Below are positions 33,128 through 64,000 of a stretch of DNA of 64,000 nucleotides, piece by piece; position 1 is the stretch's first letter, and the number at the start of each line of letters is the position of its first letter. Below the pieces are notes generated by a model, which made no database searches, was not told where the DNA came from, and was given only the letters and a program-made list of their open reading frames with translations. The position numbers were made by a program, and so were the translations under genes. Where the stretch lies: assembly GCF_000315625.1 (NCBI RefSeq), contig NW_005434634.1, forward strand, positions 396,531 through 460,530. The letters run 5' to 3'. The stretch comes from Guillardia theta CCMP2712. Taxonomy: Eukaryota > Protista > Cryptophyta.

Positions 33128-33289
33128 GACCACAAAGAGGGAAAAATGCCTCCCCTCTTCTATACACTGAATGACAGCTATCAGAATAGCTATCTACTCT
33201 TCACCATCATCTCAACCTTTTCGGCTGTTGCAGCTGCATTCCCAGCACACGTTGCCTTCCCGCCATTGTGCCTTTCACAAACTTTTGAG

Positions 33290-34114: not shown

Positions 34115-37100
34115 ATGTCACGGATTATTGCCTTGCTCCTCATTCTCTGTCTCTGGGACGCTCAAAGCAATCAAGATGCCCTTGACATCCCGATTCTGAG
34201 GATCGTGGAGCCGACGTTTGGATCAAAGCTTGGTGGTACCGTTATAACCCTGAGGGGCTTTTCATTACCAGCAAACAACTCTTTCTGCCGGTTCGGGGAG
34301 GTCGCGATCGTTACCCCCATCTACTCCTCGGAGAATGAATTCATCTGTGAGACCCCTGCGCATTCAGTGGGGAAAGTTGCGGTCGATCTGATCAATGGCA
34401 ACCAATTCCTTTCCAACATGAACAAATTGTTGTTTGAATTCACAGGTACTTTGAATCTATAGACATTTCGTTTGGGTATGTAATGATTTCCTTTTCATGG
34501 CAGAGCCAACTCAAGTGACATTGATATTTCCATGCCGAGGCCCACGACAGGGAGGCACTCGGGTAAGGATATACGGAAAATGGTTTCCGAACAGTATCTC
34601 CTTGGGATGTTTGTTCGGAATTTCCTACATTCCAGCGAGATGGATTACAACCTCTGAGTTGGAATGCCTATCGCCGCCAAAGAAGTCAGGCCTTGAAGTA
34701 TCTGTCAGAATTACTTCGAACAAAGTGGATATTTCACAATCGTATCAAGCATTTGCTTATCAAGGTGATGAATTGCTACTTCGAATCGCTTTTGCTATCT
34801 GACACCTTTGGTTGGCAGAGAATCATCGTTTGTTTTCAATTTTTCCAACACTTTCTCCGGTGGATGGTGGTGTTGTGATCACTGCATTTGGAATGTATTT
34901 TTCTCCCTCGGACTCAGTCTTCTGTAAATTTGGCGAAGTGGAGAGTGCTGGCATGTATACTTCATCTTCTCAAATTTCATGTCTAGCTCCCTCCAATCTT
35001 GTCGGCAAGTTAAGTGTGGATGTCAGCAATAACAGGTTTGATTACACTTCCAGTGCCATTGAACTTGAGTACACGGAACATTCCTATCTGTATTCAATTT
35101 TCCCGACGTTTGGACCATTACGCGGAGGCACTGTGCTAAGAGTGTTTGGTTCTAACTTTGTATCATCGAACACCTCAATACTCTGCGTTTTTGATGACAT
35201 TCTTTTTGGAAGTGCTACTGTGGTTTCAAATAGCCAAATTTTTTGCCTCACTCCTCCTTCGCTACTAGAAAGGACGATCTCTCTTGCCGTTATGTCCAAT
35301 GAAAGTTTGTCCTCTGTAAATATGAAGGACTTTCATTACTATCCAACAATATCTTTGTATACCATTGTTCCGAGTCTTGGATCTCTCAGCGTCAAGACAA
35401 AAATCACGGTACTTGGCAAAAATTTTATCAGCTCACCATATCTGAGCTGTCAATCAGAATTTGATAACGAGATTATCACTGTGAATGCTTCCTGGATAAC
35501 TTCCACATCAATAATTTGCACTTTACCGATTCATAACTACACGTCAACTTTCCAGACAACAATAAGGGCCTCCAATAACGCATTGGATTTTTCTCTGGAA
35601 ACCTTAACTTTTCAATCTCTGCCACTTTTGAATGTCAATAGCATCTTCCCATCATCGGGCCCAACGGATGGTGGAACTTCCATTACTGTCGTCGGTCAGA
35701 ACTTTGGAAATACGCTCGTTCTTTGCTGCAAACTTGCCAATACGGTTTCTCCTGCTGTATACTTGTCTTCGTCACTTCTTAAATGCTATTCTCCAAGGTC
35801 AAAAAGCGGGATCATTCCCATGTTAATTTCGAACGATGGCAATCTGTTTGTCGATTCAGGTTCATTTTACTACTATTCATCTTTCAGAGTCTTATCTGTC
35901 ACTCCAAGTATACTGGCGGCCCATCAGTACAACATTATCAATATCACTGGGATAGGATATCAGCAGATAAAATTTACCGATGGTTTGCTTTGTAAGTTTG
36001 GAGCAATGTCTACAGTTGGAACGATGATCACATCATCTTTTCTGGTTTGCCGCACCCCGAAATTAGATGTACAAAACTCTTCAATGATGATATCATTCAA
36101 TCAAGCTGACTTTTTCGACATCGATTCTCCATTAAATTTTGTAGCATTACCAAAGATAGCTACCATGGCACCCATGAAAGTTCCGTTGTACTTTCCCTTT
36201 GAAATATACTTACAAGGATACGGATTTGATGTTTCAAGGCAAATGAAGCTAACACTGAACAATGCAGTACACCCGATTGAAATTTTGAACAGTACAGTAG
36301 CAAAATTTCGGTCAGACTTAGTCACTTCTCCAGGAAACTACGAAGTTCTGTTTGGATTCGATACTATCAACTTGTGGACCACCGGATTGCTGCTTGAATT
36401 CGATTACAGCAACACTTTTGTTGATGTGCATCCGTCTCTAGGCCCTTCCATCGGAGGAACTATTGTCACACTCAAATTCATCTCGAATATCTGGTCTGGC
36501 ATCCGATATGAGTTTGTTTTTGGTGATCAAGTTTCTCAGAATTATACTCTTCATGGAACTGACGTGATCTGTTGGACGCCTCCCCAAACGACTGGATGTC
36601 ACGAAGTTTCTGTCGCTATAGATGGGGTCTTGTCGAAATTAGAGGGAATTTCATATGAGTATTACTTGTTGGAGGAAGTGATTACTTTGATTCCAAGTAT
36701 AGTATTGGCAAACAAACTTTCTGTGATAACAGTTTTGGGAGAAAATTTTATTCACCAAGAATGTATCTCTAATTTCAATTCCTGGATAGCATGGTGTAGA
36801 CTCTCGTCTGGACGGAACTTCGACGGTACGATTGTTTCAAGTACTCTTTTACTCTGTTCGATTGACTTCGAGCTCCCTGGACAAGTGGGCCTGGAGATTT
36901 CAACCAACAATGTAGATTTTACCAACAATAGTCTACAAGTCTCGATAATTCAAGAAGCAATCGTGTTCGGTCTTGCCCCTACTGTCGGTCCATCTAGTGG
37001 AGGTCTTGTAGTCAGTTTTACAGGACTTTACTTAAATTTCTGGGAAGCATGCATGATGGAGGAAATTCGTCTCAATGTAGCGTATGCCTCCTCGTCCGTG

Positions 37101-43100: not shown

Positions 43101-46100
43101 ATCGGCTACGAAAATCTGCACCTGAATGTATATCCTCATATTGAGCTCAAGGCTGTTCATCCAGCGACAGCTCAACTTGTGCAGGGAATGATGATCAGTT
43201 TGTTAGGGACTGGCTTTGAACCGACTGTAAGATATTCTTGCAGATTTCATGGATTGAATGGAATTCTGTTTGATGTCGTTGCTTTTGATGTCACTATTAA
43301 TCAGGTGATTTGCAAGCTTCCAAACAGTTCCGCAACTTTGTTAAGGGGAATATCGGTCACGCATTCGCAAGAAACATTGAGTAACATATTTCGTTTACAA
43401 GCAGTAATTTGTCAACGCTATGTATCATATTTTCCAAGCAAAGGGCCAGCTTCAGGTGGAACATTGATCAAATTGATCTATCAGTATCCTATTTCTGGAA
43501 GACTTCTACAAATGACATGGGGGGACTTTCTTTTGAATTGTACATTAATTGGGAATACAATCAGTTTTTTCACGCCTATCTGGAAAAATTTGTCGATGGA
43601 AGTGATTTCGTTCTTGAATGTGGATGGAGCAATATGCAGTGATTCACCGATTAATTTCCAATACTTTGACAATCTGGTGATAGAACAAGTTTTTTATCAT
43701 GTCAATCATACCACAATAGACATTGTAGGCAAGGGATTTTCAAGACAAATTTGTTGCTTGTTCAATGATTCTCTTGTTATTTTGCCTTTGGAAATCTCAG
43801 AAACGCGATTAAAGTGCGCTTTGAGGAATTCATCTCATCCATTGCAAAAACTTGTTATTCTTTCAAACTGTAGCACGTTGGAGGATTCTGATCCTCCTAC
43901 CTTTGTGTGGAATTCTTTGATTCCTTTGTCATTTTTCTCAGTCAAGTTTGATTTTGAAATTTCAAGATTGATCATTGACTTGCATCCTTCTGTCCTTGAT
44001 TTTCCGGGCAAACTTCATTTTCAATCCAAAGAGCTTGGCGTGCCTCTTGCTCCGTTGGATGCTTTACACATCGAAGTTTCAGTTGAAATTCCATACCCAC
44101 GAAGAGACGTTTCAGTTGAATTTTGGCATGAAATATTTGCAACAACGAATATTTACACCGTTCAAATAGAAATTAATCCCATTCCAATTCCTTTGAATCT
44201 GAAGTATAACTTGTATGGTGACAAGGGAGACACAACAGTTTCGTTTAAATTTGATAGTTACTGTGAAATAGCTCTGTGTCACGTTGGGAAAATGTATATT
44301 TTGCCAGAAAGTATCCTTTCCAAGAATTCAGATGCAATCTACGGTCCGAGCTACACTCTGAAATTCTTGGAATCCGAGCAGAATGTCAGAAAGATGCTGG
44401 AAAAGCAGGTGTAAATTTGCTCTTAGAAAATTCTCCAATTTCATGGGCATCTGTCAGTCCCGCACAGACTTGCCAGAGCCTCCCGACAAAGTTGATCTTG
44501 CGCGGTGCTGGTTTCGATTGTCATCAGAAATTGAGATGCAAAATTGGACAATATTTCTCAACATCAGCAAATTGCTTGAGCTCTTCGATGATGAGTTGTT
44601 TCATTAATATTCAACAGGAAGGGAATTTTTCAATTTTCTTGACATGGAATCACATTGATTTTATCGAGACACCATTTGCAATGACTGTGACATCGTTTTT
44701 GCAAGACATCACTATATACCCGACGAAAGGACCATTTCAAGGTGGATCAAAAGTTTTTGTGACGATACCATTGTATAGCACGACAAACCATAGCATAAAA
44801 TGTGTGTTTGGAAACAAGTTGGTTCCTTTGTACACTCAAGACAGAGAAACTCTGTTCTGTTTTGTCCCAAGGCATGTCTTAGCAGAATCCATCGATTTTA
44901 TGATCAGATTCGACAACGTTTGTACCTCCCGGAAACTGCGTTTTCAATACTACAAAGATACAGTGATAGAGAGAATCTATCCAAGGCAAATTCGTACAGG
45001 TGTTGAATCTGAAATTTTTGTTGTAGGCATGTTCCTGGAAAATATATCATTTTGCGTATTTGGAATTCTTCAAGTTCCTACAGCCTTGTTTTCAGTGTCT
45101 GTATTGAGATGCAATCTACCTCCGCTGACATCAGGAAGCTACAAGTTTTCGATGGTACTGAACTCTTCTGATATTTGTGCCTCAGACCTGCTATTGGAAG
45201 TTTATGATCCTGTGATTATCACTGCTGTCATGCCATCAGTTCCCATCTGCAGAGTTGGTGCTGACCTGACTATTGTCGGGAATAATTTTTTGGACACAGA
45301 ATTCCTTTCATGCAAAGTAAACAAGGCGTTGCCAAGCCTTTTACAAATTATTACCTCAACTGCGGTGAAATGCCCTTGTCCATCCTCGACTGAATTATTG
45401 GAGACTATTTCTATCAGTATTGATGGAAAACTGTGGAATCATTCAAAATTGACGATTCAAAATGGACCCAGGATCTTTAAGATTTTTCCAACAATCTCTG
45501 CAATTTTCGGTAGATCAAATGTATCGGTGTACGGAATCGGTTTTGCGAAAAATTCATTCGTTCTATGCAAGTTTGGTCAGCACATTTCTGAACCTGTCAT
45601 GCCCTCCTCCTCTACTTTAATCCACTGTCTCAGGCCAAAAATTGAATTTGCTCCCTTAAATCCCTTGCCATTCCACCTGGGGTTTCAATTCGGGTCTCAC
45701 AGCTTCTATACTTCTTCACACTTGTCTTTTCGATATACGGAAGCCGAAATTTTTTCATTGAAACCGTTGCTGAAGCCAAGCTCTGGGTTTGTCCTTACCA
45801 TCATAGGCAATTTCGGGTTTCTTCAATTTCCCTCATGCAATCTCACCTGTCCAAAACTTTTGCAACCAGCATGCTTTTTGCAATCCTCGTCAATCTTGAA
45901 AGTTCAAATTCCTCCAGTTCAGCAGGTCCATTGCCATCTTCAGATTTCTTTCCAAAATAGAGGAAATTCTCTGAACATCTCTCTCACTTTGAATCGCGAT
46001 CTCCTTTCTCCATCCGTTTCTTCAATTTTTCCAACAACGCTTTCATTGTCCAATGACAAATTCATCACCATCTTTGGAAAACATTTTAGAAAGGAAGCAT

Positions 46101-49100
46101 CCATAGAATGCATATGGGGCTCAAAAATTTCGTTCACTGCATTGTTCTTGAGCCAAACATCCATCCTTTGTGCTGCTCACATTCAAACTACAGGAAACCA
46201 CACCCTTCAAATCATTGATGTAGACCAAAATTCATTAATGTATTCTCATTTCTTTGAAGTTGGCACCGTAGTTCGCATCAATCGTTTCCGAACTGTTTCT
46301 CCAACCTCCAACCCCCAATCTGACCTGAAAGCAAGGAAGATATATCCTTCCTATGGCCCAACACTGGGTCATTCTCTTGTCCGTTTGATTTCTGAAGGGC
46401 TGCAATCTTTCAGTTACGTCACGTTCAGTCACTCTAGTGGGCTTTTTGAAACCCAAGTGTTGAGCTCAACTGTTCTGCAATGCAGGACGCCTGCAGGTAG
46501 AGCTGGTCCTGTGACTGTTGAAGTTGTTTCAGGTAGTGGTGAACAGTCGCAAGTTGTGTTTGGCAGATACCTGTACAAAGAACCGGAGCTGATACTCCGA
46601 GTTCAGCCATCGGTCTGTCCTGAGCACGGGGGTCTTCTTGTGACTGTGATTGGAGAGCATTTCACAGCTAGTGAAGATGCTGTATGTAGATTTGGCTCTA
46701 GCGGAGAGGATGGGGTCTCAGTCTCAGCTCGGCTTTTGATTTGTCGGTGTCCAGCAAATCGTGCGGGGGAGGTGTACTTGGATGTAAGCAGCAATGGTGT
46801 AGATTATTCGTTGAACAAGATTCCCTTTATGTATACGTCACAAGTGATCATCCTCTCCATCTATCCAAGCGTCGCAGTTTCTTCTGTCAAGACAGTTGTG
46901 CAAGTACGTACGACGCCTGTCCTTTCTTCTGCTTTGCTTTGTCATTTTGGGAATCAAAGTGCGGTAGCAGTCTTAGAAAGTAGCAGCATTCTCTCGTGTA
47001 CGACCCCAGCGCATTTGCCTGGTGATGTAGTCTTGCGCATAGAAGAAGCAGAGCACCAATTTTCCACGGGCGTCACGTTTGCCTTTCTTGAAGCTCCACG
47101 AATCATGTCTTTAAACCCGAGCACGTGGACCTCGTCAGGAATCAGCATGATTCGAATAGTGGGCAGTGGGTTCGACAAATCGGGTGCCATCTGCATGTTA
47201 GGGCAGGAGGTGAAGGTCGACGCGGAGGTACGTAGTACATCAGTAGCCCTTTGCAAATCATCGGCTCCAAGAGACAGGAAAAACGTGGAAGTGAAGCTTG
47301 TTTTCAACGCTTTGCAGTATACGACGAATGGACTGATGCTATACCACTATGAAAGTCCCATGATCATGAAGATAATCCCTTCAGTAGTATCAAACCAAGA
47401 TGCGAGGGTCTTGACCGTATATGGAGACTCTTTTGTGAGCGGTGGAAGCAAAGTTTTCTTGCACATTGGATCCAGCAACATGCTTGAAACTTCACTGGTC
47501 TCCAGCACTAAGCTTTTGTGCGCATTTTCAAACTTAGCCTGTGGGAAATATACAGTTGGTGCTTCTTTTGCAGGTCTTGACTATGCTTTTTGGTCACAAC
47601 ATTTTTTTCTTGTTTCATGCCTTGAAAATCCAGAATCTGAAATTTACCTTTACCTTATCAAACCAACTTTTGGATTCCTCAACAGAATCAATCGCGTGTC
47701 TATTATTGGAATCAATTTTGATTCAAATACAAATTGCCAATTTGGAAATCTAGAGTCCTCTCAATTCAAGTACTTGTCAAGCACTCTCTTAGTCTGTCTC
47801 AGTCCTCCGTTTCCCCACATTGACCAGGATATCTTCGAGGTGTCACTAAGCCTACGGCGGGATGGCAGACAACAGCAAGGTACTTTCGCGTATCAATATT
47901 ATCGCACGCCCAGTATTCAATCTGCCTTTCCCGTTGTCTCAACCATTGGCGAATCCATGATCACCGTCTATGGTGCGTCTTTTTCACCTGTTTTTGAGTA
48001 CCAATGTTGCTTTGGAGCACGTGATGAAGTTTTGGCACAAGTCATCACTTCGAGCCAGGTGCTCTGTCATCATACAACGCTGAGGGATGGAAATCACAGC
48101 CTGAAAATCAAGATGAACGGTAACTTGGTGTTGTCTACATCTATGCATATTTTGGTTGAGGGACTGGTCAAAATAAGCAGTTTCACACCAACCCGCGTGC
48201 CACTTCAAGGTGGCGTGCCCCTACGAATTGTGTTGACATCCGACCTAGTACATTCCCAAGTACAGTGCAAGATTGGGGACAGTACTTCAGCGCCCATTTT
48301 TGCTCGAGGCAACTTGATCTTGTGCCGTGTACCTCAGAGAGAACCAGGCAAATGCAAAGTAGCAATCAGCACTCCGAGCGGTCTGCTTACATCTGGGATG
48401 GACTTAGACTACCCGCACGTCTACTACGAGATTCTTTCATATAAACCGACAACATGTTCGCCAAGCGGAGGGACAAAGATCTCTGTAAGGCTCAGTTCTA
48501 TCCTAGAGGATAGGGTTTCTTGTAAATTTGGGACGGTATCAGTGCCAGGTTTGGTGCGGCGTAACGCCAGCCTGGTAGTCTGCCATTCACCAAAGCATGA
48601 CAAGGGGCCCGTGAGTTTTCAACTTGCAGGTGATCATGGGAAGAAATCTGCTTTGTATCCATTTGAATATTTGGAACCTCTCATGATTTTAGATGTTGAG
48701 CCAGCGAGGATTTCTTTGAGCAACAAAACTGTCCAGTTGACCCTGAAAGGTCGAAACTTTGGAGCAGATATGCTGCATTGTAGTATAGGAAGGACACTCC
48801 AAGTACAATGTTTTCCTCGAGACGAGCATACAGCTACCTGCGACTTGACACCAGTCTTGCCTCCCGGAGTACATGTGATAAGCTGTAGCTTGAATCAGGT
48901 AGAGTATCGTACATCAAGGCGAGCACTTGAGGTGGTGTCATACTGTGTGATAAGCTCAGTACACCCGTCACGGGTTCTCTTGTCCTCCAGAGGCCGATTG
49001 ACTATAGCTGGGTCGGGCTTTTCACCAGGAGTCAGCTGTAGATTTGGCACAGCAAATTCAGAACTTGCTGTCTATATTACATCATCACTTTTGCAATGTG

Positions 49101-52100
49101 AGTATCCGCGCCAGCACAGGCTATCTCGTTTGACTGTGTACCTTGAAGAGAGTCAAAGCGGGAGTCAGTTGTGTGCGACAACGCTAGGGTATTTTGCAAA
49201 GCCTGAAATACTTCATGCGAGCACTATCCGCAATATCCTTACTGGAAACTCGTTTGAAGTGCATATTGCTGGCAGTAATTTTGAACGCACAGCCAAATGC
49301 ATGTTTTCATATGATGGACAACAGCTGACAGCGAGTGTGCTCTTTTCTTCTTCTTCTCTGGTAAGATGTGTCCTCAATGAGAAATACTTAATGAAAAGTG
49401 GTAGCAATCTGCTATTCTTGAGTAATGACGGAATCGATTACATACAAGTAGGTTCAGACTGGGCAGAATGTGCACCAGAGCCTGTCCCGCTGCATTTTCA
49501 TCCAAGTTTTGGTCAAGCACTTGGAGGCACAAGAGTAACATTTTCTGGCAGTAGGATATCTCGAATAGCTCGATGCCTGATAGAGTTCAGGTGTAGATTC
49601 GGAAATAAGGATGCGATGGAAAGCAAGATACTCTCTTCTTCTAGGCTGATGTGCTTGAGTCCACCCCAGGTCGAAGGAAATGTGACTCTCCGTCTGATGG
49701 CACAAGGGATGCAATTGAACAACAATGCCATGCTTTTCGAGTATCAGAAGGTCTTCAACCTATACAGCTTCACGCCTCAGTCATTCTTGGCGGGATACGA
49801 GGTGAATGTGACCATCATTGGGTCTGCATTCATGAGATACTCTGAGTACCAATGCGTTTTAGGAAAACATGAGGTTCGTGCCGCATGGCTGTCCTCATCA
49901 TGTTTGGTATGTAAGTCAGGGATCCACCGAGAGGCATCATGGATCGCCTTGAGCATCTGCACGGGCAACATTTCACAATCTTGCGTCGTCATGAAGCACA
50001 AAGCTCGCGTTTCCCCCAGGCCTGAAGTACAGAGCATCAAACCATCCAATGGGCCATCGCTCGGTGGGACGAGATTGACGATCTTTGGAAAATACCTTGA
50101 TTTGATCAATGCCAAGTGCACTTTTGGATTTGCAGGTACAACTCCAGCAAGAGCAGAGACTTCGTCGCTTGCTACCTGTATCACCCCTTGTACAGATCCG
50201 GGGATCGAAAGCTTTGGGTATGGGTTTGAGCTATGGGAGTACTTAGGTCCCTTGACGTATACATTCATCAGCGAAACTACAATTCTTAGTGCAAGCCCAA
50301 CTTATGCAGTCTTATGCAAGAATGAAGCGATCACGGTGCATGGATTCAACTTCGACGCAAAAACAAGCTCGTGTTACATGAATGATATGAGGACAACACT
50401 ACGACTTCTGGACCAGTACACTGCTATTTGTACTTTGCCTTGTCTGGAAGAATTTCTGGGTAGAATAGTACTGAGGGTCTGTGCACAAGGATACAATTGT
50501 TCAAGCTCTTTCGTGAATCTTCAAACCCAACTCAGCAGCTCCCCGATAGCTATCTCACCGACAAGATCTCCACTCCAAGGAGGTATTCGTATTAGACTAG
50601 ATGGAGATTTCAACAAAGACAAGTATAGCATAAATGTCAGTTTAGGGCAGTTTTCGGTATCAGTCACGAAGAACAGATCTAGCAATGGATTGTATGAGTT
50701 CTTCTCACCGCCTCAGAGTGTCACAGGCGTCTTCAACTTTTCTGTGAGGATACCTGGATCTGCTTTCGAGATTGGTTCCTTTGCACTTGAGTACTACTCC
50801 TATGCAGAAGTCACTAGGTTGATACCGTCCTGTAGCTGGCTCCGGGATAGTTTCAAGCTAACCTTGGTTGGTTCAAACTTTTTAGATCAAACTCATTGCC
50901 AAGTTGGAGATTTCAGCATTTCTGGTACTTCTTTCATTTCCTCTAGCCTGATCATATGTCCGGTTGCAGCATTTCATAGTTTCAAACCGTATGCTGAAGT
51001 GGAAGTGAAGCTTCTAAATGATGGGATCTCGAGTTGTTGCTATGCTAATCATTCAATATTCTACTACAAGCAACAATGCCTCATTTTGCGGGTCCATCCT
51101 GCCGTTGGCGGTCTACTTGGAGGCCAGTCGGTGCAGCTTACCTTGAGCACAGAACTTGACGTCGAGGGCTCAGTGGTTTGTCAATTTGGAAAGATACAGG
51201 TTTCTGGATCTATGCTCTCATCGTCCGTTGTACTGTGCGTCAGTCCACCGTCAGAGAATGCAGCAAATGTGTCATTGAGTATAACCATCGATGGCATCAT
51301 CGTTGCAACATCGTCAGAGGAATACAAGTATGTAGATCTTGGGATCATAATCTCGGCAGACCCAAGCTGTTGCATCTCCAACGCTGGTAGGTGTATTGTT
51401 TACCAAGCAGCAGATTTGAGTAAGCCCGAGGCCGTGAGATGCTTGATTGGCAATGATACAGCTCTTCCCTTGAGCATTTCCTCAACCTCCGTAACTTGCA
51501 CAGTGCCGCCAGCTTCATCTCAAGGCACGCAGATGGGTATCATGGAAGGCACAACCATTCTGAGCGGGAATGGACTGAAATATTCCAGAAGTCTAAGTTG
51601 GGCAGTACACTTGATTCAACCAAGCAGTGGTCCTTTCGCCGGTGGTGAAACTGTCTCTGTAATTGGCCTTGGTTTTTGCAAACACGACAAATGGTTATGC
51701 CGGTTTGGCGCGAAATCGGTTGGTGCAAAGTACATGACATCAAGTTTGATGCACTGCATGTCCCCAAGTGCACCCAGCAGGTCAGAACAATGGTTCGATG
51801 GAAGCTCTGTATCCCTCGTTGTGGATTCTGAAAATATCCCGGGGGCCAAGCAGAAATTTTCATACCGCTACGTGACTGAGGTCCATGTTTCCTCCTTTTT
51901 CCCATCTAGAGTAGCATCACGGGTTGGAACTTCCATATCCATGATCGGTGTGGAATTCATGAGCACGGCGAGAATTCATGTCTTGCTCAACGGAGCTCAT
52001 GCCGTGAGCACAATTTTCATGAGTTCTACATTGCTCATGGTGAAAATACCCCCTTTGAACTGCGGCCAGTACCTTTTGGGAGTCCGATCAGAGGGGATGG

Positions 52101-55100
52101 ATTCGTTCTCCTTCTCCGGGATGCTCCACGTAGAAAACTTGAGTGCGGTCAGGCGGGTTGTACCGAGCTACAGTAGATTGGGAGGTGGACAGGCTGTAAA
52201 CATTACTGGCATTGGACTCACAGAACTGTCGAATACTTGTAAGTTTGGATCTACCACTGCCAAGTGTACGCACTTGGACAGTATGATAATGCGGTGTATT
52301 ACACCTCCTGCACAGTCCTCTGGAGGTACATTTTTAGATCTGTACATGGGAGAGAGCTTGTATGCGTCTCTTCCTTTCCTGTACTACCGGGACTGGACAA
52401 TTCAAGTAAGCAGTATCAGACCAACATCCGGTTTGCACAGTACGCAAGTCAGGATAACTTTCAGCGGGCAATTCTCCAATCTACTCGACAACGCAAGATG
52501 CCGAGTAAGAAATACTAAGATTGCAACGCCGTTGATGATTTTGTCTTCGACTGCAATGGGCTGTATCATACCAGCCCTCAGTCCTGGAAGCTATTCCCTC
52601 TACATGGAACAGGAAACGTGGAGGACGAGCGACTTTCATTACATAAGTTTGGAGGGATGGAATGTAGATCGCATCGTACCAAGTAGGGGGTTACGCGAAC
52701 AGTTGAAAACCTTTCGAGTCATAGGGGGCACATTCCGACTTGATGAAGAACTTGATTGCATTGTTGGAAACTTTGTATCGAGGGGAGAGGTACTGACGAG
52801 GTCTGAAATTTTATGTCGAGTAGAAGGTTTGCCTTGTGGAAATTACACTATAGGATTGAAGGCTGGAACTGAAGCCTTCTTTCGCACAAAGCATACACTA
52901 GAGCTATTACTTCCTGTATCGGTAACAAGCATCTGGCCTTCTTCTGGAGTTTGTGATGCCTTTTTCAATGTTTCGATTCATTTATCTGGTGACTTTCGTA
53001 CCCTCGGAAATGCCTCATGCAAGTTTGGTCGACAGTCTTTGGCAATGTTTGATCTCGAAAAGGGATACAGTTGTCAAGTGTTTCAACCATGTTCTGCTTT
53101 TCAGAAGAGATTCAATCTTGTTTCTTTTCAGTTCTGGTTAGATGGTTTCGTGAGCCATCACATGTTCTTTCGAATTCACAAAAATGATTTATCGTTTGCA
53201 TCAACGTTTGTTGCTGATGCTCCAGAACTTGGATTCAAAACATTTTGTCATAGTTTTGAGTACATTTTATACAACGAAACACTTTTGTTTACGGGAAGCT
53301 TGCCCAGTGCATTCCAATCCAGTTTATACTGTTTCTCCCGACAGCGATTTGCTCATGTCGTCCAAAAAACTAAAACGACCTTTCAATGTCAAGCTGAATG
53401 GTTGCGAGAGATGCAAGGAATTTTTATCATGTACCTATCTCATCATGAAAACAGAAGCAATTATACATGCAAAATACCAATTCATGAAATCCAGATAAAT
53501 CGATCTAATCAACAACCACAAATCTTCAGCATCAGACCGAGCCAAGGAAATCATCTATTACACACACGAGTTGAAATACATGGAAAATATTTTCACCAAA
53601 CGGACACATGTATGTTTGGAAATCTAGAGTCCTCTCAATTCAAGTACTTGTCAAGCACTCTCTTAGTCTGTCTCAGTCCTCCGTTTCCCCACATTGACCA
53701 GGATATCTTCGAGGTGTCACTAAGCCTACGGCGGGATGGCAGACAACAGCAAGGTACTTTCGCGTATCAATATTATCGCACGCCCAGTATTCAATCTGCC
53801 TTTCCCGTTGTCTCAACCATTGGCGAATCCATGATCACCGTCTATGGTGCGTCTTTTTCACCTGTTTTTGAGTACCAATGTTGCTTTGGAGCACGTGATG
53901 AAGTTTTGGCACAAGTCATCACTTCGAGCCAGGTGCTCTGTCATCATACAACGCTGAGGGATGGAAATCACAGCCTGAAAATCAAGATGAACGGTAACTT
54001 GGTGTTGTCTACATCTATGCATATTTTGGTTGAGGGACTGGTCAAAATAAGCAGTTTCACACCAACCCGCGTGCCACTTCAAGGTGGCGTGCCCCTACGA
54101 ATTGTGTTGACATCCGACCTAGTACATTCCCAAGTACAGTGCAAGATTGGGGACAGTACTTCAGCGCCCATTTTTGCTCGAGGCAACTTGATCTTGTGCC
54201 GTGTACCTCAGAGAGAACCAGGCAAATGCAAAGTAGCAATCAGCACTCCGAGCGGTCTGCTTACATCTGGGATGGACTTAGACTACCCGCACGTCTACTA
54301 CGAGATTCTTTCATATAAACCGACAACATGTTCGCCAAGCGGAGGGACAAAGATCTCTGTAAGGCTCAGTTCTATCCTAGAGGATAGGGTTTCTTGTAAA
54401 TTTGGGACGGTATCAGTGCCAGGTTTGGTGCGGCGTAACGCCAGCCTGGTAGTCTGCCATTCACCAAAGCATGACAAGGGGCCCGTGAGTTTTCAACTTG
54501 CAGGTGATCATGGGAAGAAATCTGCTTTGTATCCATTTGAATATTTGGAACCTCTCATGATTTTAGATGTTGAGCCAGCGAGGATTTCTTTGAGCAACAA
54601 AACTGTCCAGTTGACCCTGAAAGGTCGAAACTTTGGAGCAGATATGCTGCATTGTAGTATAGGAAGGACACTCCAAGTACAATGTTTTCCTCGAGACGAG
54701 CATACAGCTACCTGCGACTTGACACCAGTCTTGCCTCCCGGAGTACATGTGATAAGCTGTAGCTTGAATCAGGTAGAGTATCGTACATCAAGGCGAGCAC
54801 TTGAGGTGGTGTCATACTGTGTGATAAGCTCAGTACACCCGTCACGGGTTCTCTTGTCCTCCAGAGGCCGATTGACTATAGCTGGGTCGGGCTTTTCACC
54901 AGGAGTCAGCTGTAGATTTGGCACAGCAAATTCAGAACTTGCTGTCTATATTACATCATCACTTTTGCAATGTGAGTATCCGCGCCAGCACAGGCTATCT
55001 CGTTTGACTGTGTACCTTGAAGAGAGTCAAAGCGGGAGTCAGTTGTGTGCGACAACGCTAGGGTATTTTGCAAAGCCTGAAATACTTCATGCGAGCACTA

Positions 55101-58100
55101 TCCGCAATATCCTTACTGGAAACTCGTTTGAAGTGCATATTGCTGGCAGTAATTTTGAACGCACAGCCAAATGCATGTTTTCATATGATGGACAACAGCT
55201 GACAGCGAGTGTGCTCTTTTCTTCTTCTTCTCTGGTAAGATGTGTCCTCAATGAGAAATACTTAATGAAAAGTGGTAGCAATCTGCTATTCTTGAGTAAT
55301 GACGGAATCGATTACATACAAGTAGGTTCAGACTGGGCAGAATGTGCACCAGAGCCTGTCCCGCTGCATTTTCATCCAAGTTTTGGTCAAGCACTTGGAG
55401 GCACAAGAGTAACATTTTCTGGCAGTAGGATATCTCGAATAGCTCGATGCCTGATAGAGTTCAGGTGTAGATTCGGAAATAAGGATGCGATGGAAAGCAA
55501 GATACTCTCTTCTTCTAGGCTGATGTGCTTGAGTCCACCCCAGGTCGAAGGAAATGTGACTCTCCGTCTGATGGCACAAGGGATGCAATTGAACAACAAT
55601 GCCATGCTTTTCGAGTATCAGAAGGTCTTCAACCTATACAGCTTCACGCCTCAGTCATTCTTGGCGGGATACGAGGTGAATGTGACCATCATTGGGTCTG
55701 CATTCATGAGATACTCTGAGTACCAATGCGTTTTAGGAAAACATGAGGTTCGTGCCGCATGGCTGTCCTCATCATGTTTGGTATGTAAGTCAGGGATCCA
55801 CCGAGAGGCATCATGGATCGCCTTGAGCATCTGCACGGGCAACATTTCACAATCTTGCGTCGTCATGAAGCACAAAGCTCGCGTTTCCCCCAGGCCTGAA
55901 GTACAGAGCATCAAACCATCCAATGGGCCATCGCTCGGTGGGACGAGATTGACGATCTTTGGAAAATACCTTGATTTGATCAATGCCAAGTGCACTTTTG
56001 GATTTGCAGGTACAACTCCAGCAAGAGCAGAGACTTCGTCGCTTGCTACCTGTATCACCCCTTGTACAGATCCGGGGATCGAAAGCTTTGGGTATGGGTT
56101 TGAGCTATGGGAGTACTTAGGTCCCTTGACGTATACATTCATCAGCGAAACTACAATTCTTAGTGCAAGCCCAACTTATGCAGTCTTATGCAAGAATGAA
56201 GCGATCACGGTGCATGGATTCAACTTCGACGCAAAAACAAGCTCGTGTTACATGAATGATATGAGGACAACACTACGACTTCTGGACCAGTACACTGCTA
56301 TTTGTACTTTGCCTTGTCTGGAAGAATTTCTGGGTAGAATAGTACTGAGGGTCTGTGCACAAGGATACAATTGTTCAAGCTCTTTCGTGAATCTTCAAAC
56401 CCAACTCAGCAGCTCCCCGATAGCTATCTCACCGACAAGATCTCCACTCCAAGGAGGTATTCGTATTAGACTAGATGGAGATTTCAACAAAGACAAGTAT
56501 AGCATAAATGTCAGTTTAGGGCAGTTTTCGGTATCAGTCACGAAGAACAGATCTAGCAATGGATTGTATGAGTTCTTCTCACCGCCTCAGAGTGTCACAG
56601 GCGTCTTCAACTTTTCTGTGAGGATACCTGGATCTGCTTTCGAGATTGGTTCCTTTGTACTTGAGTACTACTCCTATGCAGAAGTCACTAGGTTGATACC
56701 GTCCTGTAGCTGGCTCCGGGATAGTTTCAAGCTAACCTTGGTTGGTTCAAACTTTTTAGATCAAACTCATTGCCAAGTTGGAGATTTCAGCATTTCTGGT
56801 ACTTCTTTCATTTCCTCTAGCCTGATCATATGTCCGGTTGCAGCATTTCATAGTTTCAAACCGTATGCTGAAGTGGAAGTGAAGCTTCTAAATGATGGGA
56901 TCTCGAGTTGTTGCTATGCTAATCATTCAATATTCTACTACAAGCAACAATGCCTCATTTTGCGGGTCCATCCTGCCGTTGGCGGTCTACTTGGAGGCCA
57001 GTCGGTGCAGCTTACCTTGAGCACAGAACTTGACGTCGAGGGCTCAGTGGTTTGTCAATTTGGAAAGATACAGGTTTCTGGATCTATGCTCTCATCGTCC
57101 GTTGTACTGTGCGTCAGTCCACCGTCAGAGAATGCAGCAAATGTGTCATTGAGTATAACCATCGATGGCATCATCGTTGCAACATCGTCAGAGGAATACA
57201 AGTATGTAGATCTTGGGATCATAATCTCGGCAGACCCAAGCTGTTGCATCTCCAACGCTGGTAGGTGTATTGTTTACCAAGCAGCAGATTTGAGTAAGCC
57301 CGAGGCCGTGAGATGCTTGATTGGCAATGATACAGCTCTTCCCTTGAGCATTTCCTCAACCTCCGNNNNNNNNNNNNNNNNNNNNNNNNNNNNNNNNNNN
57401 NNNNNNNNNNNNNNNNNNNNNNNNNNNNNNNNNNNNNNNNNNNNNNNNNNNNNNNNNNNNNNNNNNNNNNNNNNNNNNNNNNNNNNNNNNNNNNNNNNNN
57501 NNNNNNNNNNNNNNNNNNNNNNNNNNNNNNNNNNNNNNNNNNNNNNNNNNNNNNNNNNNNNNNNNNNNNNNNNNNNNNNNNNNNNNNNNNNNNNNNNNNN
57601 NNNNNNNNNNNNNNNNNNNNNNNNNNNNNNNNNNNNNNNNNNNNNNNNNNNNNNNNNNNNNNNNNNNNNNNNNNNNNNNNNNNNNNNNNNNNNNNNNNNN
57701 NNNNNNNNNNNNNNNNNNNNNNNNNNNNNNNNNNNNNNNNNNNNNNNNNNNNNNNNNNNNNNNNNNNNNNNNNNNNNNNNNNNNNNNNNNNNNNNNNNNN
57801 NNNNNNNNNNNNNNNNNNNNNNNNNNNNNNNNNNNNNNNNNNNNNNNNNNNNNNNNNNNNNNNNNNNNNNNNNNNNNNNNNNNNNNNNNNNNNNNNNNNN
57901 NNNNNNNNNNNNNNNNNNNNNNNNNNNNNNNNNNNNNNNNNNNNNNNNNNNNNNNNNNNNNNNNNNNNNNNNNNNNNNNNNNNNNNNNNNNNNNNNNNNN
58001 NNNNNNNNNNNNNNNNNNNNNNNNNNNNNNNNNNNNNNNNNNNNNNNNNNNNCGATCAGAGGGGATGGATTCGTTCTCCTTCTCCGGGATGCTCCACGTA

Positions 58101-61100
58101 GAAAACTTGAGTGCGGTCAGGCGGGTTGTACCGAGCTACAGTAGATTGGGAGGTGGACAGGCTGTAAACATTACTGGCATTGGACTCACAGAACTGTCGA
58201 ATACTTGTAAGTTTGGATCTACCACTGCCAAGTGTACGCACTTGGACAGTATGATAATGCGGTGTATTACACCTCCTGCACAGTCCTCTGGAGGTACATT
58301 TTTAGATCTGTACATGGGAGAGAGCTTGTATGCGTCTCTTCCTTTCCTGTACTACCGGGACTGGACAATTCAAGTAAGCAGTATCAGACCAACATCCGGT
58401 TTGCACAGTACGCAAGTCAGGATAACTTTCAGCGGGCAATTCTCCAATCTACTCGACAACGCAAGATGCCGAGTAAGAAATACTAAGATTGCAACGCCGT
58501 TGATGATTTTGTCTTCGACTGCAATGGGCTGTATCATACCAGCCCTCAGTCCTGGAAGCTATTCCCTCTACATGGAACAGGAAACGTGGAGGACGAGCGA
58601 CTTTCATTACATAAGTTTGGAGGGATGGAATGTAGATCGCATCGTACCAAGTAGGGGGTTACGCGAACAGTTGAAAACCTTTCGAGTCATAGGGGGCACA
58701 TTCCGACTTGATGAAGAACTTGATTGCATTGTTGGAAACTTTGTATCGAGGGGAGAGGTACTGACGAGGTCTGAAATTTTATGTCGAGTAGAAGGTTTGC
58801 CTTGTGGAAATTACACTATAGGATTGAAGGCTGGAACTGAAGCCTTCTTTCGCACAAAGCATACACTAGAGCTATTACTTCCTGTATCGGTAACAAGCAT
58901 CTGGCCCACGTATGGTGCAATGAATTCAAATACCTCAGTGACGGTCCACGGCCTTCGATTTGACAGTCACATGCGGGTATACTTCCACAGACATCCTCTT
59001 TCTTATTCGATTTTGAATTCGACAACATTGATCGTAGATTTCCTCAGTTCCATTCAATATCAATCAGATTACACTTCAGGTTGTGTTGACGCAAATTTTA
59101 CTAATCACACCATTCCTTGCAAAATCACATTCTGGTATCATTCGCATCTTGTGAAAGGAATTTCATTTAGGTTTTCAGCAAAACCCGATTCGAAGTCAGA
59201 CTTTTTGTATGATCCCTTTGCTCAAAACGAGATGTCAAATACAGCAGTTTTTCTTGGACCAACCAAAGGATCCGTGCGGGGTGGAACCAAAGTATTTTTC
59301 AGATTTGTCAATGTTACAGGATCCTTCAAAACTCGATACTGCAAATTTGATTCTGCATTGGAAAAACTTCAATACGCATTTGATCAGTATTATTGCTCAT
59401 CGCCAGCGAACCGGAAAGGACTTGCTAACCTCTCGCTGGGTTGGGATGATTCATATACGGATGATATTAGTGGGGTGCCTTTCCAGTACATTCCTGAAGC
59501 CGTGCTACTCTCGGTTCTCCCTACACAAATCTTCAGCGGGTCCACCGCTGTTTTGACCATACTGGGAGAGTCATTTGATGAGGATGCTCATGTGCGGGTA
59601 GGCGACCGCGCTTGTTTTGGACTGTCTTTCATTTCGTCTACCATCCTGTCTTGCATCATTCCAGCACAGACGCTGGAAGGCTTGCTGCAGGTGTGGGTAT
59701 CCAACACAGGNNNNNNNNNNNNNNNNNNNNNNNNNNNNNNNNNNNNNNNNNNNNNNNNNNNNNNNNNNNNNNNNNNNNNNNNNNNNNNNNNNNNNNNNNN
59801 NNNNNNNNNNCAACCGTCCTCGGTTGATGTCGGAGGTCAACTGGTCACGCTAGTCGGCAAGGGCTTTAGTCGTGACAGGGAGTACGAGTGCGACTTTGGT
59901 AAAGAAGAACGAGTTGGTTGCCAAGGAATCTCGTTAACGGCGGTTGAGTGCAGAGCACCAGCTCACAGGCCTGGGAACGTGAGTCTCAGGCTATGGCACG
60001 GGAACGGTCAGTTCTTAGTCTTGTCCCCGCTGCTTTCGTACCATTCACCGATTCGAGTGGACAGTATCACTCCGAGTTTTGGACCGAGCCGGGGTGGAAG
60101 TCGAGTGACAGTGAATGGTGCTGGCTTTTCTGTTTCAAAGAACTTATTTTGTAGGTTCGGATTTGATGCATCATCGAGTGAAGTAGTAAGCAGTTCTTTG
60201 TTGATCTGCATTACACCGGAGAAACGTCCTAGCCATGATATCATCACTGTTGCGTCCCAAAATGGAACCATTTTGCCTTCATTTGTTTATCACTTTCAAG
60301 ATCCAATCAAAATCCTTGGCATCTGGCCTAGCTTTGGATCAGTACTCGGAGGTACAGTGGTGATATTGAAGGGTGAAGGCATATCGAGACTTAGCCATTG
60401 TCGTTTCGGACATAACAGCTCGCAGACATCTGCGGTGTACACGTCTAGTTCAATCATGCATTGTACCAGTACAACTCATACCACACAAGAAGTAGTGCCT
60501 TTGACAATATCTACAAGCCACGGTGAAGAAAGGCACGTCATGGACTTTGAATACATCGTGCCTTTGAATGTTCTTGAGGTCAGACCGAGAATGGTCTATC
60601 ATGGCTGTGGCATGCAATCTTTGACTGTAATTGGAAGCAACTTGAAGAGGACGGAAGATATGGGATGCCGGTAGGTTCAAAGTACGTAAAGGGGATTTAC
60701 ATGACTTCAACTTCAATGCGATGTAATGTTATATTTGAGCGGCATGGCAAGGCACATCTCAGCGTCACATTGAATGGCGCCGATTATGTTCGGTGCCCTC
60801 AGGCAATAGAGGTACAAGAGGCGATGGAGGTTATGGAAGTCCTGCCTCGCGAAGTGGAGTATGTTGCAGGGACGTTGGTGACCATCGTTGGTACCAACTT
60901 CAATGATAAACTCACATACGAGTGTTTCATTGAACCACGGACTAGCATGAAGGCTAGAGTGATCAATGAAACAGCATTGATTTGTCCACTTTCAATCATT
61001 GACAATCCTTTAGATGAGCTGTGTCTCGGGGTCAGAGTAATTGGACAGGAAAATTGTGCTTTTCACTTGCCATGTGCTGCCTTGTGGCAGGACGCAGAAA

Positions 61101-64000
61101 TCCTGTCTCTTTCACCTTCAAGAGTCAATCTTCTAAGCGCGCCTGTACAAAGCATTCTAGTTGCTGGGAAAGGCTTTCGTCAGTCCAACTACATGTGCAA
61201 ATTTGGTGCACATATCACAGAAGGCACTGTGGTAACATCGAGTTTATTACATTGCCCTGCTCCACGACAATGCGGATCATTCTCATCGTTCGTTACAGAC
61301 TTGAACGGTAATAGCTGCAAGGGTTTGCTTTTGTTTGAAGTTGTTTGTGCCGATTTGTATGGTGTTACTCCCTCCTTTGGGAATGTCTGTGGATCCCAAC
61401 GAATAACGTTGTATGGCAAGGGATTTGCAGCTGCTGGCGATGCTTTCTGTACTTTTGGAAGGGACCAGAGGAGGATTGTAGATGAGTTTCTAAGTAGTAC
61501 TGCTCTTGTTTGCTTGACTCCATCCTGGGACAAGGTCGGTTTAGCAGAGATTTCCGTTCTGTGGGACCATAAAGATCTCCCGACAGATAGCGTGGCTTTC
61601 CGATATGTGTACTCAAGCTCCATTTACCATATTCATCCATCCAGGGGCAGAGTCGCAGGGCAGTTTCGCATTACAGTCTATGGTCACAACTTTCCAACAG
61701 TGAGTAGTGCAGGCATCTTCCATTGCAGGTTCGGACTCCAGAAGACTATTGCATCACGAGTGTCTTCGAGCATTGTGCATTGCAACGTGCCGACAAAAGA
61801 CAGTTTTGCTGTTGTCAACTTCTCGCTGGGTTGGGATGATTCATATACGGATGATATTAGTGGGGTGCCTTTCCAGTACATTCCTGAAGCCGTGCTACTC
61901 TCGGTTCTCCCTACACAAATCTTCAGCGGGTCCACCGCTGTTTTGACCATACTGGGAGAGTCATTTGATGTGGATGCTCATGTGCGGGTAGGCGACCGCG
62001 CTTGTTTTGGACTGTCTTTCATTTCGTCTACCATCCTGTCNNNNNNNNNNNNNNNNNNNNNNNNNNNNNNNNNNNNNNNNNNNNNNNNNNNNNNNNNNNN
62101 NNNNNNNNNNNNNNNNNNNNNNNNNNNNNNNNNNNNNNNNNNNNNNNNNNNNNTGGAAAGTATTCAACCGTCCTCGGTTGATGTCGGAGGTCAACTGGTC
62201 ACGCTAGTCGGCAAGGGCTTTAGTCGTGACAGGGAGTACGAGTGCGACTTTGGTAAAGAAGAACGAGTTGGTTGCCAAGGAATCTCGTTAACGGCGGTTG
62301 AGTGCAGAGCACCAGCTCACAGGCCTGGGAACGTGAGTCTCAGGCTATGGCACGGGAACGGTCAGTTCTTAGTCTTGTCCCCGCTGCTTTCGTACCATTC
62401 ACCGATTCGAGTGGACAGTATCACTCCGAGTTTTGGACCGAGCCGGGGTGGAAGTCGAGTGACAGTCACAGGGTACGGATTTCACTTGGAATCTCACCTT
62501 GTATGTTGCCAAGGTCTTGATTGTCTCCCGGCTGAAATCATTGATTCATCGCACATTCTTTGTGTTCCTGCAATACTCAGCCCTCAACGTTCTTTTGAAA
62601 TTTTCACATGGGCATGTTGTGGGAAGATTTGAGTTCTGTTTATGCGAGACGAGGAGTTTCAATTTGATTAGAACGTCCATGATTGAGAATCTATCCTACA
62701 GCTTCTCCGTCCAAGGAGAATGTTTTGATGCAGGGTTACAGTGCCATTATTTATTTGATGATGGCCAGGAAAGCCTTAGGCAAATAGAGCTGATTTCATC
62801 CACCTTGCTTTCCTGTTCCTTGCCGGTTGTTTTTCAAGGAATACGAGGAATTGAAGTGATTGATTCCAGTATGCGACCTGTTGGAGCTTTATTTGAGCCA
62901 AATCTATCACAGATTCACTCAATCTTGCCTTCTCTTTCAAGTACAATGAGTGGCCTAAGAGTTACTGTAATTGGATATTTCCCAGCCACCAGACTTAATT
63001 GTCATCTTGGATCTCATCCAGGCCATGCTCTTTGGTACTCAAGTAGTGTTGTGTACTGTAATCTTCCAGCAGTCCAGAGGCCAGGGTCATACATGATCAG
63101 GGTTAGCACTTCCGATTCCGTTTCTGAGCTGAGCTCGAAACAAATTGTTTTCTATGAAAGTGTTTCCTTCACTGGTTTTCACATTGATGATTTAAGGTCA
63201 GAAATCCTCATATTTGGTCAGAATTTCAAATCAAATGGAAATGCCATTTGCAATGTTTCAGGACAATTGATCGAGTCAGAAAGAATATCTTCTAGATCCT
63301 TAAAATGTCTACTCCACATGAAACAAAGTGAGATAACATATGTTTCAGTCTTGGTTGACGATTCTCACTATGTTGTCGAACCACTCTCTGTCACCGAGTT
63401 GACTTTGCTATTCGTCCGTCCATCGATGGCACCAATGTCCGGAGGAATGATAATTACAGTAGTGGGGAAAGGTTTTGACGTTTCAAGGTTTATGACTATC
63501 GGAGGTATCAAAACTCCCTTTGAAATAATAACGAGTTCCTTGATACTGCTGTTGGTTCCAAGCATTCAACGTGAAGTATCCCCACGTATTTGTTTAACGC
63601 ATGCCATGACTTCCATTGGAGCTTGTCTTGAGAAGGCGTACTCCTACGTTCGTAATCCACATTTGATTGAAATACTTCCTTCAAGCTTTGACCAGGAATA
63701 TCACGTGATGATCACTGCAATAGGGGAACACTTTGATGATGCATTGAATTTACGATGCAAACTCAGTTTGATGTCTACAGATACAGTATTTCTCAGCTCT
63801 TCGAGGGTTTTATGCAGATTTGATCGTATTGACAGTCAGGCTAATTTATCATTTTCAATCCTCTGTGGAAATTTTTCCTGTGGCGATAAGAGTTTGTTGT
63901 TTTCATTCCCAAGTATTTATTTTCGAGTTGCACCAACAACAGTGATTTACGACCAAACGACTCTTTTGCGAATACAATTTTCACAAAGGCACAATCAAAG
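34115..64000 (+). CDS. Giant secreted or cell-surface IPT/TIG-repeat protein (about 10,000 aa or more, roughly 100 domains), runs off the window, with 3 frame breaks and 3 gaps
   Basis: Signal peptide MSRIIALLLILCLWDAQS at 34115. Introns 34446-34503 and 34765-34818. Then ORFs of 3200, 4622, 869 and 655 aa and an open frame from about 62.6 kb to the end, all repeating [I/V]xPxxGPxxGGTxVxVxGxxF...CxFG...SSxxLxCxxP every 85-95 aa. Many N-x-S/T sequons. Confidence 0.9.
40493..41657 (+). repeat. Cassette R1 copy a (second copy 46354-47521)
   Basis: Identical by eye except a 3-nt insertion (TC vs TWT) in copy b. Confidence 0.95.
46354..47521 (+). repeat. Cassette R1 copy b
   Basis: Direct repeat of 40493-41657, offset 5861/5864. 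Confidence 0.95.
47741..52938 (+). repeat. Cassette R2 copy a (5.2 kb, second copy 53615-58906)
   Basis: Direct repeat with offset 5874. One substitution noticed (C50784 vs T56658, Ala/Val). Confidence 0.95.
53615..58906 (+). repeat. Cassette R2 copy b, interrupted by an N gap
   Basis: Matches 47741-52938 on both sides of gap 57366-58052. Confidence 0.93.
57366..58052. other. Assembly gap (687 N), other gaps at 59711-59810 and 62041-62153
   Basis: N runs. All three lie inside duplicated cassettes. Confidence 1.
59431..60112 (+). repeat. Cassette R3 copy a (second copy 61821-62466)
   Basis: Direct repeat. One substitution noticed (A59581 vs T61971, Glu/Val). Both copies contain N gaps. Confidence 0.92.
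61821..62466 (+). repeat. Cassette R3 copy b
   Basis: Matches 59431-60112. Confidence 0.92.

Follow-up and report, generated by a model that had tools for sequence, protein, structure and literature searches.

A predicted giant gene of TIG domains, filamin repeats and a polycystin-1-type membrane anchor in the cryptophyte Guillardia theta

The polycystin-1 family (PKD1, PKD1L1-3, PKDREJ and the sea urchin REJ proteins) combines a large Ig-like ectodomain with a REJ domain, a GPS motif and eleven membrane helices. Here we describe a predicted gene of the cryptophyte Guillardia theta CCMP2712 which shares with this family the large Ig-like ectodomain, the REJ domain, the GPS with its His and Thr, and the region of transmembrane helices 2 and 3 (TM2-TM3). 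It starts in a window of 64,000 nucleotides, which is positions 396,531-460,530 of the + strand of contig NW_005434634.1 (C40 below). The gene differs from the polycystin-1 family in that it has no PLAT domain in the first loop, five helices without the channel-like TM6-TM11 half and the TOP domain, TIG and filamin repeats instead of PKD repeats, and two cysteines in the GPS. Its predicted product is about seven times as long as PKD1.

Fibrocystin (PKHD1) and PKHD1L1 are surface proteins that, like the product of this gene, have tandem IPT/TIG domains. They contain roughly a dozen of them, G8 and PbH1 parts, and a single helix. In contrast, the Guillardia gene has five helices, and no G8, PA14 or PbH1 match was obtained with Pfam in any searched piece of it. 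Adhesion G-protein-coupled receptors (GPCRs) also have a GPS, but the Guillardia gene has five helices and no match to a 7tm family. Filamin-REJ-GPS-five-helix receptors are found in cryptophytes and other protists. Two of these, P0177 (Rhodomonas salina cluster, 7,067 residues) and P0018 (7,178 residues), share the C-terminal cassette of the giant gene, have about 44 filamin repeats and likewise end after helix 5. In the receptors on record, the signal peptide stands directly before the filamin array and there is no TIG array, whereas in the giant gene the filamin repeats are preceded by about 245 TIG domains, a TMEM132-like stretch and an SRCR domain.

MST3 of Chlamydomonas, a protein of 8,572 residues, extends over the whole 800-nm mastigoneme and is anchored in the membrane by a polycystin-type domain that pairs with PKD2 (PMC11015965). 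By this description, it resembles the product studied here as a giant algal extracellular filament protein held by a polycystin-type module. However, MST3 joins a hydroxyproline-rich helix to a PKD2-like, channel-type domain, whereas the Guillardia gene joins a chain of Ig-like domains to a polycystin-1-type, non-channel module. The PKZILLAs of Prymnesium are giant polyketide synthases (10.1101/2024.01.29.577497). PKZILLA-1 and titin are comparable in size class only; they are intracellular (an enzyme and a muscle spring), whereas the product of the Guillardia gene is predicted to be extracellular and membrane-anchored. In the full-text literature on Guillardia polycystins and cryptophyte TIG or REJ giant proteins, we found no paper on such proteins.

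Extent and domain order of the predicted giant gene

The giant gene occupies C40:430,645-525,111 (94.5 kb, + strand), and the window covers only its 5' third. We examined 100 kb 3' of the window. Positions past 64000 are given in extended numbering, which continues that of the window (C40 coordinate = extended coordinate + 396,530). From 34115 onwards, the + strand of the window contains open frames of 3,204 and 4,626 codons, and then shorter frames between three gaps of N. Beyond the window, open frames of 2,009, 1,763, 4,274, 1,274, 10,501 and 2,300 codons follow up to the stop codon at extended 128579-128581 (C40:525,109-525,111). The gene as assembled has about 30,600 readable codons, summed over the open stretches. 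A preliminary description, made from the window, had proposed a secreted protein of about 10,000 residues or more; this size was a threefold underestimate, since the gene runs 64.6 kb further.

The predicted order is a signal peptide, about 245 TIG domains, a TMEM132-like stretch, an SRCR domain, about 45 filamin repeats, a REJ domain, a GPS and five membrane helices. To follow this order, one has to read across five short introns, four assembly gaps, at least four single-base frame breaks and two ambiguous breaks. Single open stretches were used for the database searches, and joined pieces, with N at the breaks, were scored only locally against the gene's own profile. The architecture is well supported; that it corresponds to a single transcript, and what it does, we infer. 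The interpretation we prefer is that the locus encodes one membrane-tethered, GPS-cleaved TIG-filamin chain on a polycystin-1-type anchor, which would act in adhesion or mechanosensing. We give this interpretation a probability of roughly 0.55.

To count the TIG domains, we built a profile from the giant gene itself, seeded on a Pfam-verified TIG domain. In the window, the profile matched 107 domains, which recur with a period of 87 residues; 99 of these matches scored ≥20 bits. The conserved cysteine columns, C-x-F-G and L-x-C-x-x-P, were present in 76% and 86% of the domains, respectively, and the earlier estimate of about 100 two-cysteine TIG domains in the window is confirmed. A search with PF01833, which had been proposed as a check, was significant in every in-window piece, both in the first three open stretches (E-values in Table 1) and in the pieces between the gaps (E = 3.4e-34, 2.4e-25 and 4.5e-31). 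Over the whole gene, our profile gave 245 matches between extended 34205 and 101325, and 109 stretches were individually significant with PF01833.

The pairwise identity of the TIG domains was low (median 19%, 99th percentile 32%), and no periodic super-repeat was detected except at lags of 19-21, where the signal came from a few recent duplications. With such a median identity, the array is old and diverged, and is neither a recent amplification nor a collapse artefact. About 30 pairs of TIG domains exceeded 60% identity, all of them in blocks beside gaps.

The leader MSRIIALLLILCLWDAQS at 34115 is the sole N-terminal hydrophobic leader of the whole gene, which agrees with the signal peptide and extracellular location proposed before. 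The ectodomain contained 374 NxS/T sequons against 252 in shuffled sequences (1.5 times expectation), in line with the many sequons noted earlier. No TM-like segment was found in the window up to 64000, as had been noted, and neither a hydrophobic leader nor a TM-like segment was found in the giant gene between the signal peptide and the C-terminal helices.

A single frame of 10,501 codons links the last approximately 42 TIG domains to the TMEM132-like stretch, the SRCR domain and the filamin repeats. Between the TIG and filamin arrays (extended 101326-107180, about 1,950 residues), we found only an SRCR domain (E = 4.7e-06) and a weak match to the fourth TMEM132 domain (PF16070 only, E = 1e-3, 19.5 bits, below the cut-off of 27). 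The filamin repeats matched PF00630 on three pieces (E = 1.3e-91, 2e-148 and 6.9e-37), and a filamin profile of our own gave 45 repeats at extended 107182-123739. The 10,501-codon frame is connected to the last stretch by a 46-nt GT..AG intron (extended 121812-121857). This last stretch contains more filamin repeats, a REJ domain (PF02010, E = 1.4e-21, 77 bits, cut-off 25), the GPS and five hydrophobic helices, and then the stop. The GPS motif, CRYWD...ACQVYHM/TDFSSVLL (the slash marks the expected cut site), lies about 35 residues before TM1 and has the catalytic H and T. The first cytoplasmic loop, about 90 residues long, was modelled as a helix, and a cytoplasmic loop of 360 residues lies between helices three and four.

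The membrane part was compared with known families by sequence and by profile. When the last 1,200 residues were searched directly by sequence against the PDB, no match was obtained. We then used an anchor profile (A1) made of the anchor of the giant gene and 17 shorter relatives. It matched the GPS regions of adhesion GPCRs (E = 6e-13) and human polycystin-1 from just after PLAT through TM2-TM3 (6A70_B, E = 1.1e-10; also 8Z6F and 8Z6B). The motif EH..G.F....S.FTRPRR..LF..GN was aligned between the anchor and polycystin-1. By these profile alignments, the anchor and the N-terminal membrane module (TM1-TM5) of polycystin-1 are homologous. In the last 502 residues no Pfam family was found at E ≤ 0.1, and hence no PLAT, seven-helix or channel family. 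Because PLAT and the channel-like half are missing, we did not file the anchor as a strict member of the polycystin-1 family.

In the library, 873 relatives were found at E ≤ 0.001, and the best of them share the filamin repeats, REJ, GPS and five helices. These relatives end 35-50 residues after the fifth helix, as the giant gene does, and the loop motifs LPRRLF, PIEEGDEER and WLRxxLL are kept across them. P0008, a protein of 155 residues encoded on a 2,096-nt ENA contig, is 99% identical to the last 155 residues of the giant gene. A fused polycystin-1 of 11 helices, made by splicing over an antisense Rce1-like gene into PKD_channel exons further downstream, was ruled out by the relatives, which end just after helix 5.

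The REJ, GPS and five polycystin-1-type helices found downstream of the window do not agree with a simply secreted protein. An extended filament on the surface, as imagined in the preliminary description, still fits. However, the REJ-GPS-five-helix ending makes a membrane-tethered receptor or filament more likely than a role in a shed matrix, in scales or in the periplast.

We suggest that the chain would be exported and glycosylated, and then cut at the GPS (HM/T) while staying attached to the five-helix stump. An Ig-like domain measures about 4 nm, and around 290 such domains could form a flexible filament, about 1.2 micrometres long, at the surface of the cell or the flagellum. A pull on the filament, or binding to it, may be passed to the GPS and the membrane module, as is thought for adhesion GPCRs and polycystin-1. 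A polycystin-2-type channel is a possible partner, and one is encoded 2.3 kb downstream of the stop. In a more specific version, a single precursor of at least about 30,600 residues would serve as a GPS-cut tripwire of about 1.2 micrometres whose stump gates a polycystin-2-type channel, perhaps the downstream one. Contact with a grazer, particle or mate would then become a calcium signal, for instance to set off the escape jump of cryptophytes or the discharge of ejectisomes. This version is highly speculative, and we regard it as a long shot.

If the chain is made as one piece, it would be among the largest polypeptides predicted in any organism, and it would be extracellular. The REJ-GPS-TM1-5 half of polycystin-1 occurs as a free-standing anchor in protists, and here it is combined with an Ig-domain chain about 20 times longer than that of the animal protein. 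Thus, the gene would be a test case for how a force acting on a long Ig chain is transmitted to the GPS and membrane module, for the role of polycystin-1 before animals, and for the making and export of megadalton proteins. The locus is likely to be fragmented by gene predictors. The weight of the finding is reduced by the gaps and frame breaks at the locus, and by the presence of several other TIG giants in the same genome.

A single gene as the probable interpretation, and the alternatives to it

Several findings point to one gene. The whole locus uses one strand and one frame system, with a leader only at its start and helices only at its end. The TIG domains, filamin repeats and anchor are joined by the 10,501-codon frame and one clean intron. 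Every break or gap has mid-array TIG sequence on both sides. The in-window protein has its closest relative in Hanusia phi, a cryptophyte of a sister genus: protein P0001 of that species (1,380 residues) is collinear with 40626-44752 at 52% identity, and no other locus of the Guillardia genome matches it nearly as well as that of the giant gene.

Other findings weigh against this interpretation. The giant gene is predicted from the genome sequence, and its function is one that we infer in its entirety. Word searches of public proteins with pieces of 1,000 and 250 residues gave no protein from the locus within the length range that those searches cover. Four assembly gaps hide sequence of the gene, about 27 TIG domains lie in 98-100% identical duplicates next to gaps, some of which may be assembly artefacts, and the four clear and two ambiguous breaks all fall within the 5' 56 kb, with none in the 3' 38 kb. 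The GPS retains only two of the usual four cysteines. The AlphaFold model of the anchor (GPS-TM) was poor (mean pLDDT, the model's own confidence score, 57.7), and Foldseek gave only a weak GAIN match (8HC0, E = 0.02), which we did not use as support.

The duplicates deserve a closer look, for they could inflate the apparent size of the gene. In the tandem duplication, 47741-51491 equals 53615-57365 at 99.97% and 52085-52938 equals 58053-58906 at 100%. In both copies, codons of the open frame begin at the paired positions 51491/57365 and 52085/58053, and the counterpart of gap 1 in the first copy is an open stretch of 593 nt. The frame only seems to change across gap 1, because its length of 687 N is an estimate. 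At gaps 2 and 3, the left flanks (59427-59650 and 61817-62040) are 99.1% identical and the right flanks (59811-60112 and 62165-62466) 100% identical, and the register that is open before each gap is also open after it. Of these 0.7-kb units, one copy may have been duplicated by the assembly. Duplicates of at least 90% identity hold about 26 of the 107 in-window TIG domains. Further identity islands are found at extended 85752-86149 and 94202-94599, and at 87401-88246 and 95191-96036.

Could these blocks be one locus assembled twice? The true gene would then have about 25-30 fewer TIG domains. The blocks concerned are 47.7-52.9 and 53.6-58.9 kb, 59.4-60.1 and 61.8-62.5 kb, and 85.7-88.2 and 94.2-96.0 kb. 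Their identity reaches 99.97-100% over 3.75, 0.85, 0.30 and 0.40 kb, and every block touches or neighbours a gap. However, shotgun assemblers usually collapse identical repeats and do not duplicate them. The 3.75-kb pair (47741-51491 and 53615-57365) differs by one base, and a 1.17-kb pair (40493-41657 and 46354-47521) only by an in-frame 3-nt indel; these differences suggest real copies or gene conversion. Moreover, a gene stripped of all duplicates would still have about 218 diverged TIG domains and about 28,000 codons. We therefore consider it somewhat unlikely that the size is partly an assembly artefact. The islands of 98-100% identity stand amid an array that is otherwise 19% identical, and in one pair the differences crowd at one edge. 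As an observation in its own right, these islands resemble gene conversion within the giant gene.

The frame breaks bear on whether the 5' part is intact. At 44.29 kb, an intron was ruled out by P0001, which aligns straight through without losing residues: it matches 40626-44300 and then 44267-44752, with CHVGK in one frame and NVYFARKY in the next. An exact-pattern scan of metagenome contigs across this break gave no match. Introns at 60.67, 73.79 and 90.49 kb were also ruled out, as the best GT..AG model scored 8-29 bits below a one-base break (near 60670, 104 against 127 bits). The last two of these positions are the further one-base breaks near extended 73793 and 90492. For the region 62564-62687, a 124-nt intron and a one-base break are both possible, and the second ambiguous break, at extended 68.36-68.57 kb, includes an intron at 68495-68542. 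The frequency is about one break per 10 kb, and some breaks adjoin gaps, of which the fourth is at extended 89431-90309 (879 N). At extended 86526-86573 lies a 48-nt GT..AG intron-like piece, similar in type to the other introns, that holds the only in-frame stop (TGA at 86540). Once this intron is accepted, no nonsense codon is left, and the breaks lie partly beside gaps. Errors of the draft sequence are thus favoured over decay; they are most simply what the breaks would be, and fit better, although without proof.

A different explanation is that the 5' TIG part is broken or a separate unit. The working gene would then be the 3' approximately 12,700 codons from about 90.5 kb (42 TIG domains, TMEM132-like stretch, SRCR, filamin, REJ, GPS and five helices), and the in-window array would represent either a remnant that lost its function recently or one or several genes of its own. 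The last 38 kb are free of breaks, and all four clear and both ambiguous ones fall upstream of 90.5 kb, a distribution expected in about 4% of cases under an even spread, (56/94)^6. The 879-N gap divides the two parts, and cryptophyte relatives such as P0177, with its signal peptide, 44 filamin repeats and the same anchor, are complete without a TIG array. However, after no break did we find a start codon with a leader or hydrophobic segment; after each gap or break, the sequence resumes inside a TIG domain. The upstream stretches are open for 1,700 to 4,600 codons with their sole in-frame stop in the 48-nt intron-like piece, so that any decay would have to be extremely recent. Besides, the in-window part is conserved in Hanusia at 52% identity, and two of the breaks are no more than 1 kb away from assembly gaps, where a draft is least reliable. 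On balance, a separate or broken 5' part is unlikely.

The chain could also be a structural fibre of the surface or matrix without signalling. In this case, it would be shed after GPS cleavage or become part of the periplast coat, of scales or of flagellar hairs, and the five-helix stump would only deliver or tether it, as for MST3 in Chlamydomonas. About 290 Ig-like domains with conserved cysteine pairs and enriched sequons are consistent with a fibre, as are the catalytic GPS residues H and T and the precedent of MST3. Nevertheless, the TM2-TM3 signature of polycystin-1 and the conserved cytoplasmic loop motifs are kept across the relatives, which suggests more than a passive anchor, and no polymerisation module was found. 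A purely structural role therefore seems doubtful to us, and the membrane-tethered chain on a polycystin-1-type anchor is still preferred. The features of the gene within the window are collected in Table 1.

Table 1. Features of the giant gene in the window (window positions).
Feature	Position	Strand	Evidence
Start codon and signal peptide (MSRIIALLLILCLWDAQS...)	34115..34180	+	Sequence and translation
Exon 1: signal peptide and TIG domain 1, ending in phase 1	34115..34445	+	Pfam TIG E = 2e-09; spliced reading continuous
Intron 1, 58 nt, GT..AG, phase 1, separating two domains	34446..34503	+	Spliced reading continuous
Exon 2: TIG domain 2	34504..34764	+	Own-profile match 34515-34760, 72.7 bits; spliced translation
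Intron 2, 54 nt, GT..AG, phase 1	34765..34818	+	Spliced reading continuous
Open stretch, about 3,160 codons, about 34 TIG domains	34819..44290	+	Pfam TIG E = 4.9e-139
Single-base frame break within an A-run, no room for an intron	44286..44296	+	Hanusia phi P0001 aligns across without loss
Open stretch to gap 1, about 4,356 codons, about 48 TIG domains	44297..57365	+	Pfam TIG E = 1.8e-235
Tandem duplication of 5.87 kb, about 21 TIG domains, 99.97-100% identical, gap 1 in second copy	47741..58906	+	Alignment
Assembly gap 1, flanks in register with copy 1 (593 nt expected)	57366..58052	.	Duplication alignment and register arithmetic
Open TIG stretch between gaps 1 and 2	58053..59710	+	Pfam TIG E = 3.4e-34
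Assembly gap 2, at the same point of an about 0.7-kb repeated unit as gap 3	59711..59810	.	Flank comparison
TIG stretch with single-base frame break near 60670	59811..62040	+	Pfam TIG; scores of break model and intron model
Assembly gap 3	62041..62153	.	Flank comparison
TIG stretch running off the window, ambiguous break at 62564-62687	62154..64000	+	Frame open to 68487, past the window

Related loci and neighbouring genes

We also searched the genome assembly (87,145,349 bases, 669 contigs) for other genes of these types. Known TIG proteins had been said to have at most somewhat over a dozen such domains, a rule that fails for this genome. Further TIG open frames reach 16,482 codons (C67), 8,821 and 7,360 codons (C56) and 8,567 codons (C134). 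Giant TIG genes thus form a family here, with members at C67:55-111 kb (- strand), C56:183-240 kb (+ strand) and C134:14-38 kb (+ strand), and with one further frame of 4,590 codons. The other TIG loci showed 23-31% identity to the Hanusia ortholog of the giant gene. We found at least 38 REJ loci, and many of them lie in open frames of 2,000-5,000 codons. Together with the PKD_channel matches, of which there are at least 55, this is a large expansion for a unicellular alga.

A separate gene for a polycystin-2/TRP-type channel lies at C40:527,416-529,927 on the same strand, about 2.3-3.6 kb past the stop of the giant gene. An exon of 399 residues matches PKD_channel (E = 3.5e-19), and pieces of open reading frames (ORFs) upstream of it resemble S1 and the TOP domain. 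With at least 55 PKD_channel matches in 87 Mb, chance would not often place one within a few kb of the giant gene, although this is a post hoc observation. Between the stop and the channel gene, a gene for an Rce1-like CPBP intramembrane protease (PF02517, E = 9e-18) is placed antisense at C40:525,268-526,602 (- strand).

On the 5' side, a RING-finger (C3HC4) gene at window positions 32045-33133 (- strand) stands head to head with the giant gene, which leaves about 1 kb for a shared promoter region. Further upstream in the window, ORFs of 1,110 and 573 residues at 690-5742 (- strand) match the neurobeachin-type DUF4704 (E = 2e-08) and are probably part of a BEACH-family gene. An ORF with an RWP-RK domain (E = 1e-15) was found at 13298-14095 (- strand), and a calcineurin-like phosphoesterase ORF at 16126-17559 (+ strand). 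Two adjacent ORFs with trichohyalin-plectin-homology domains are located at 28488-29701 (+ strand).

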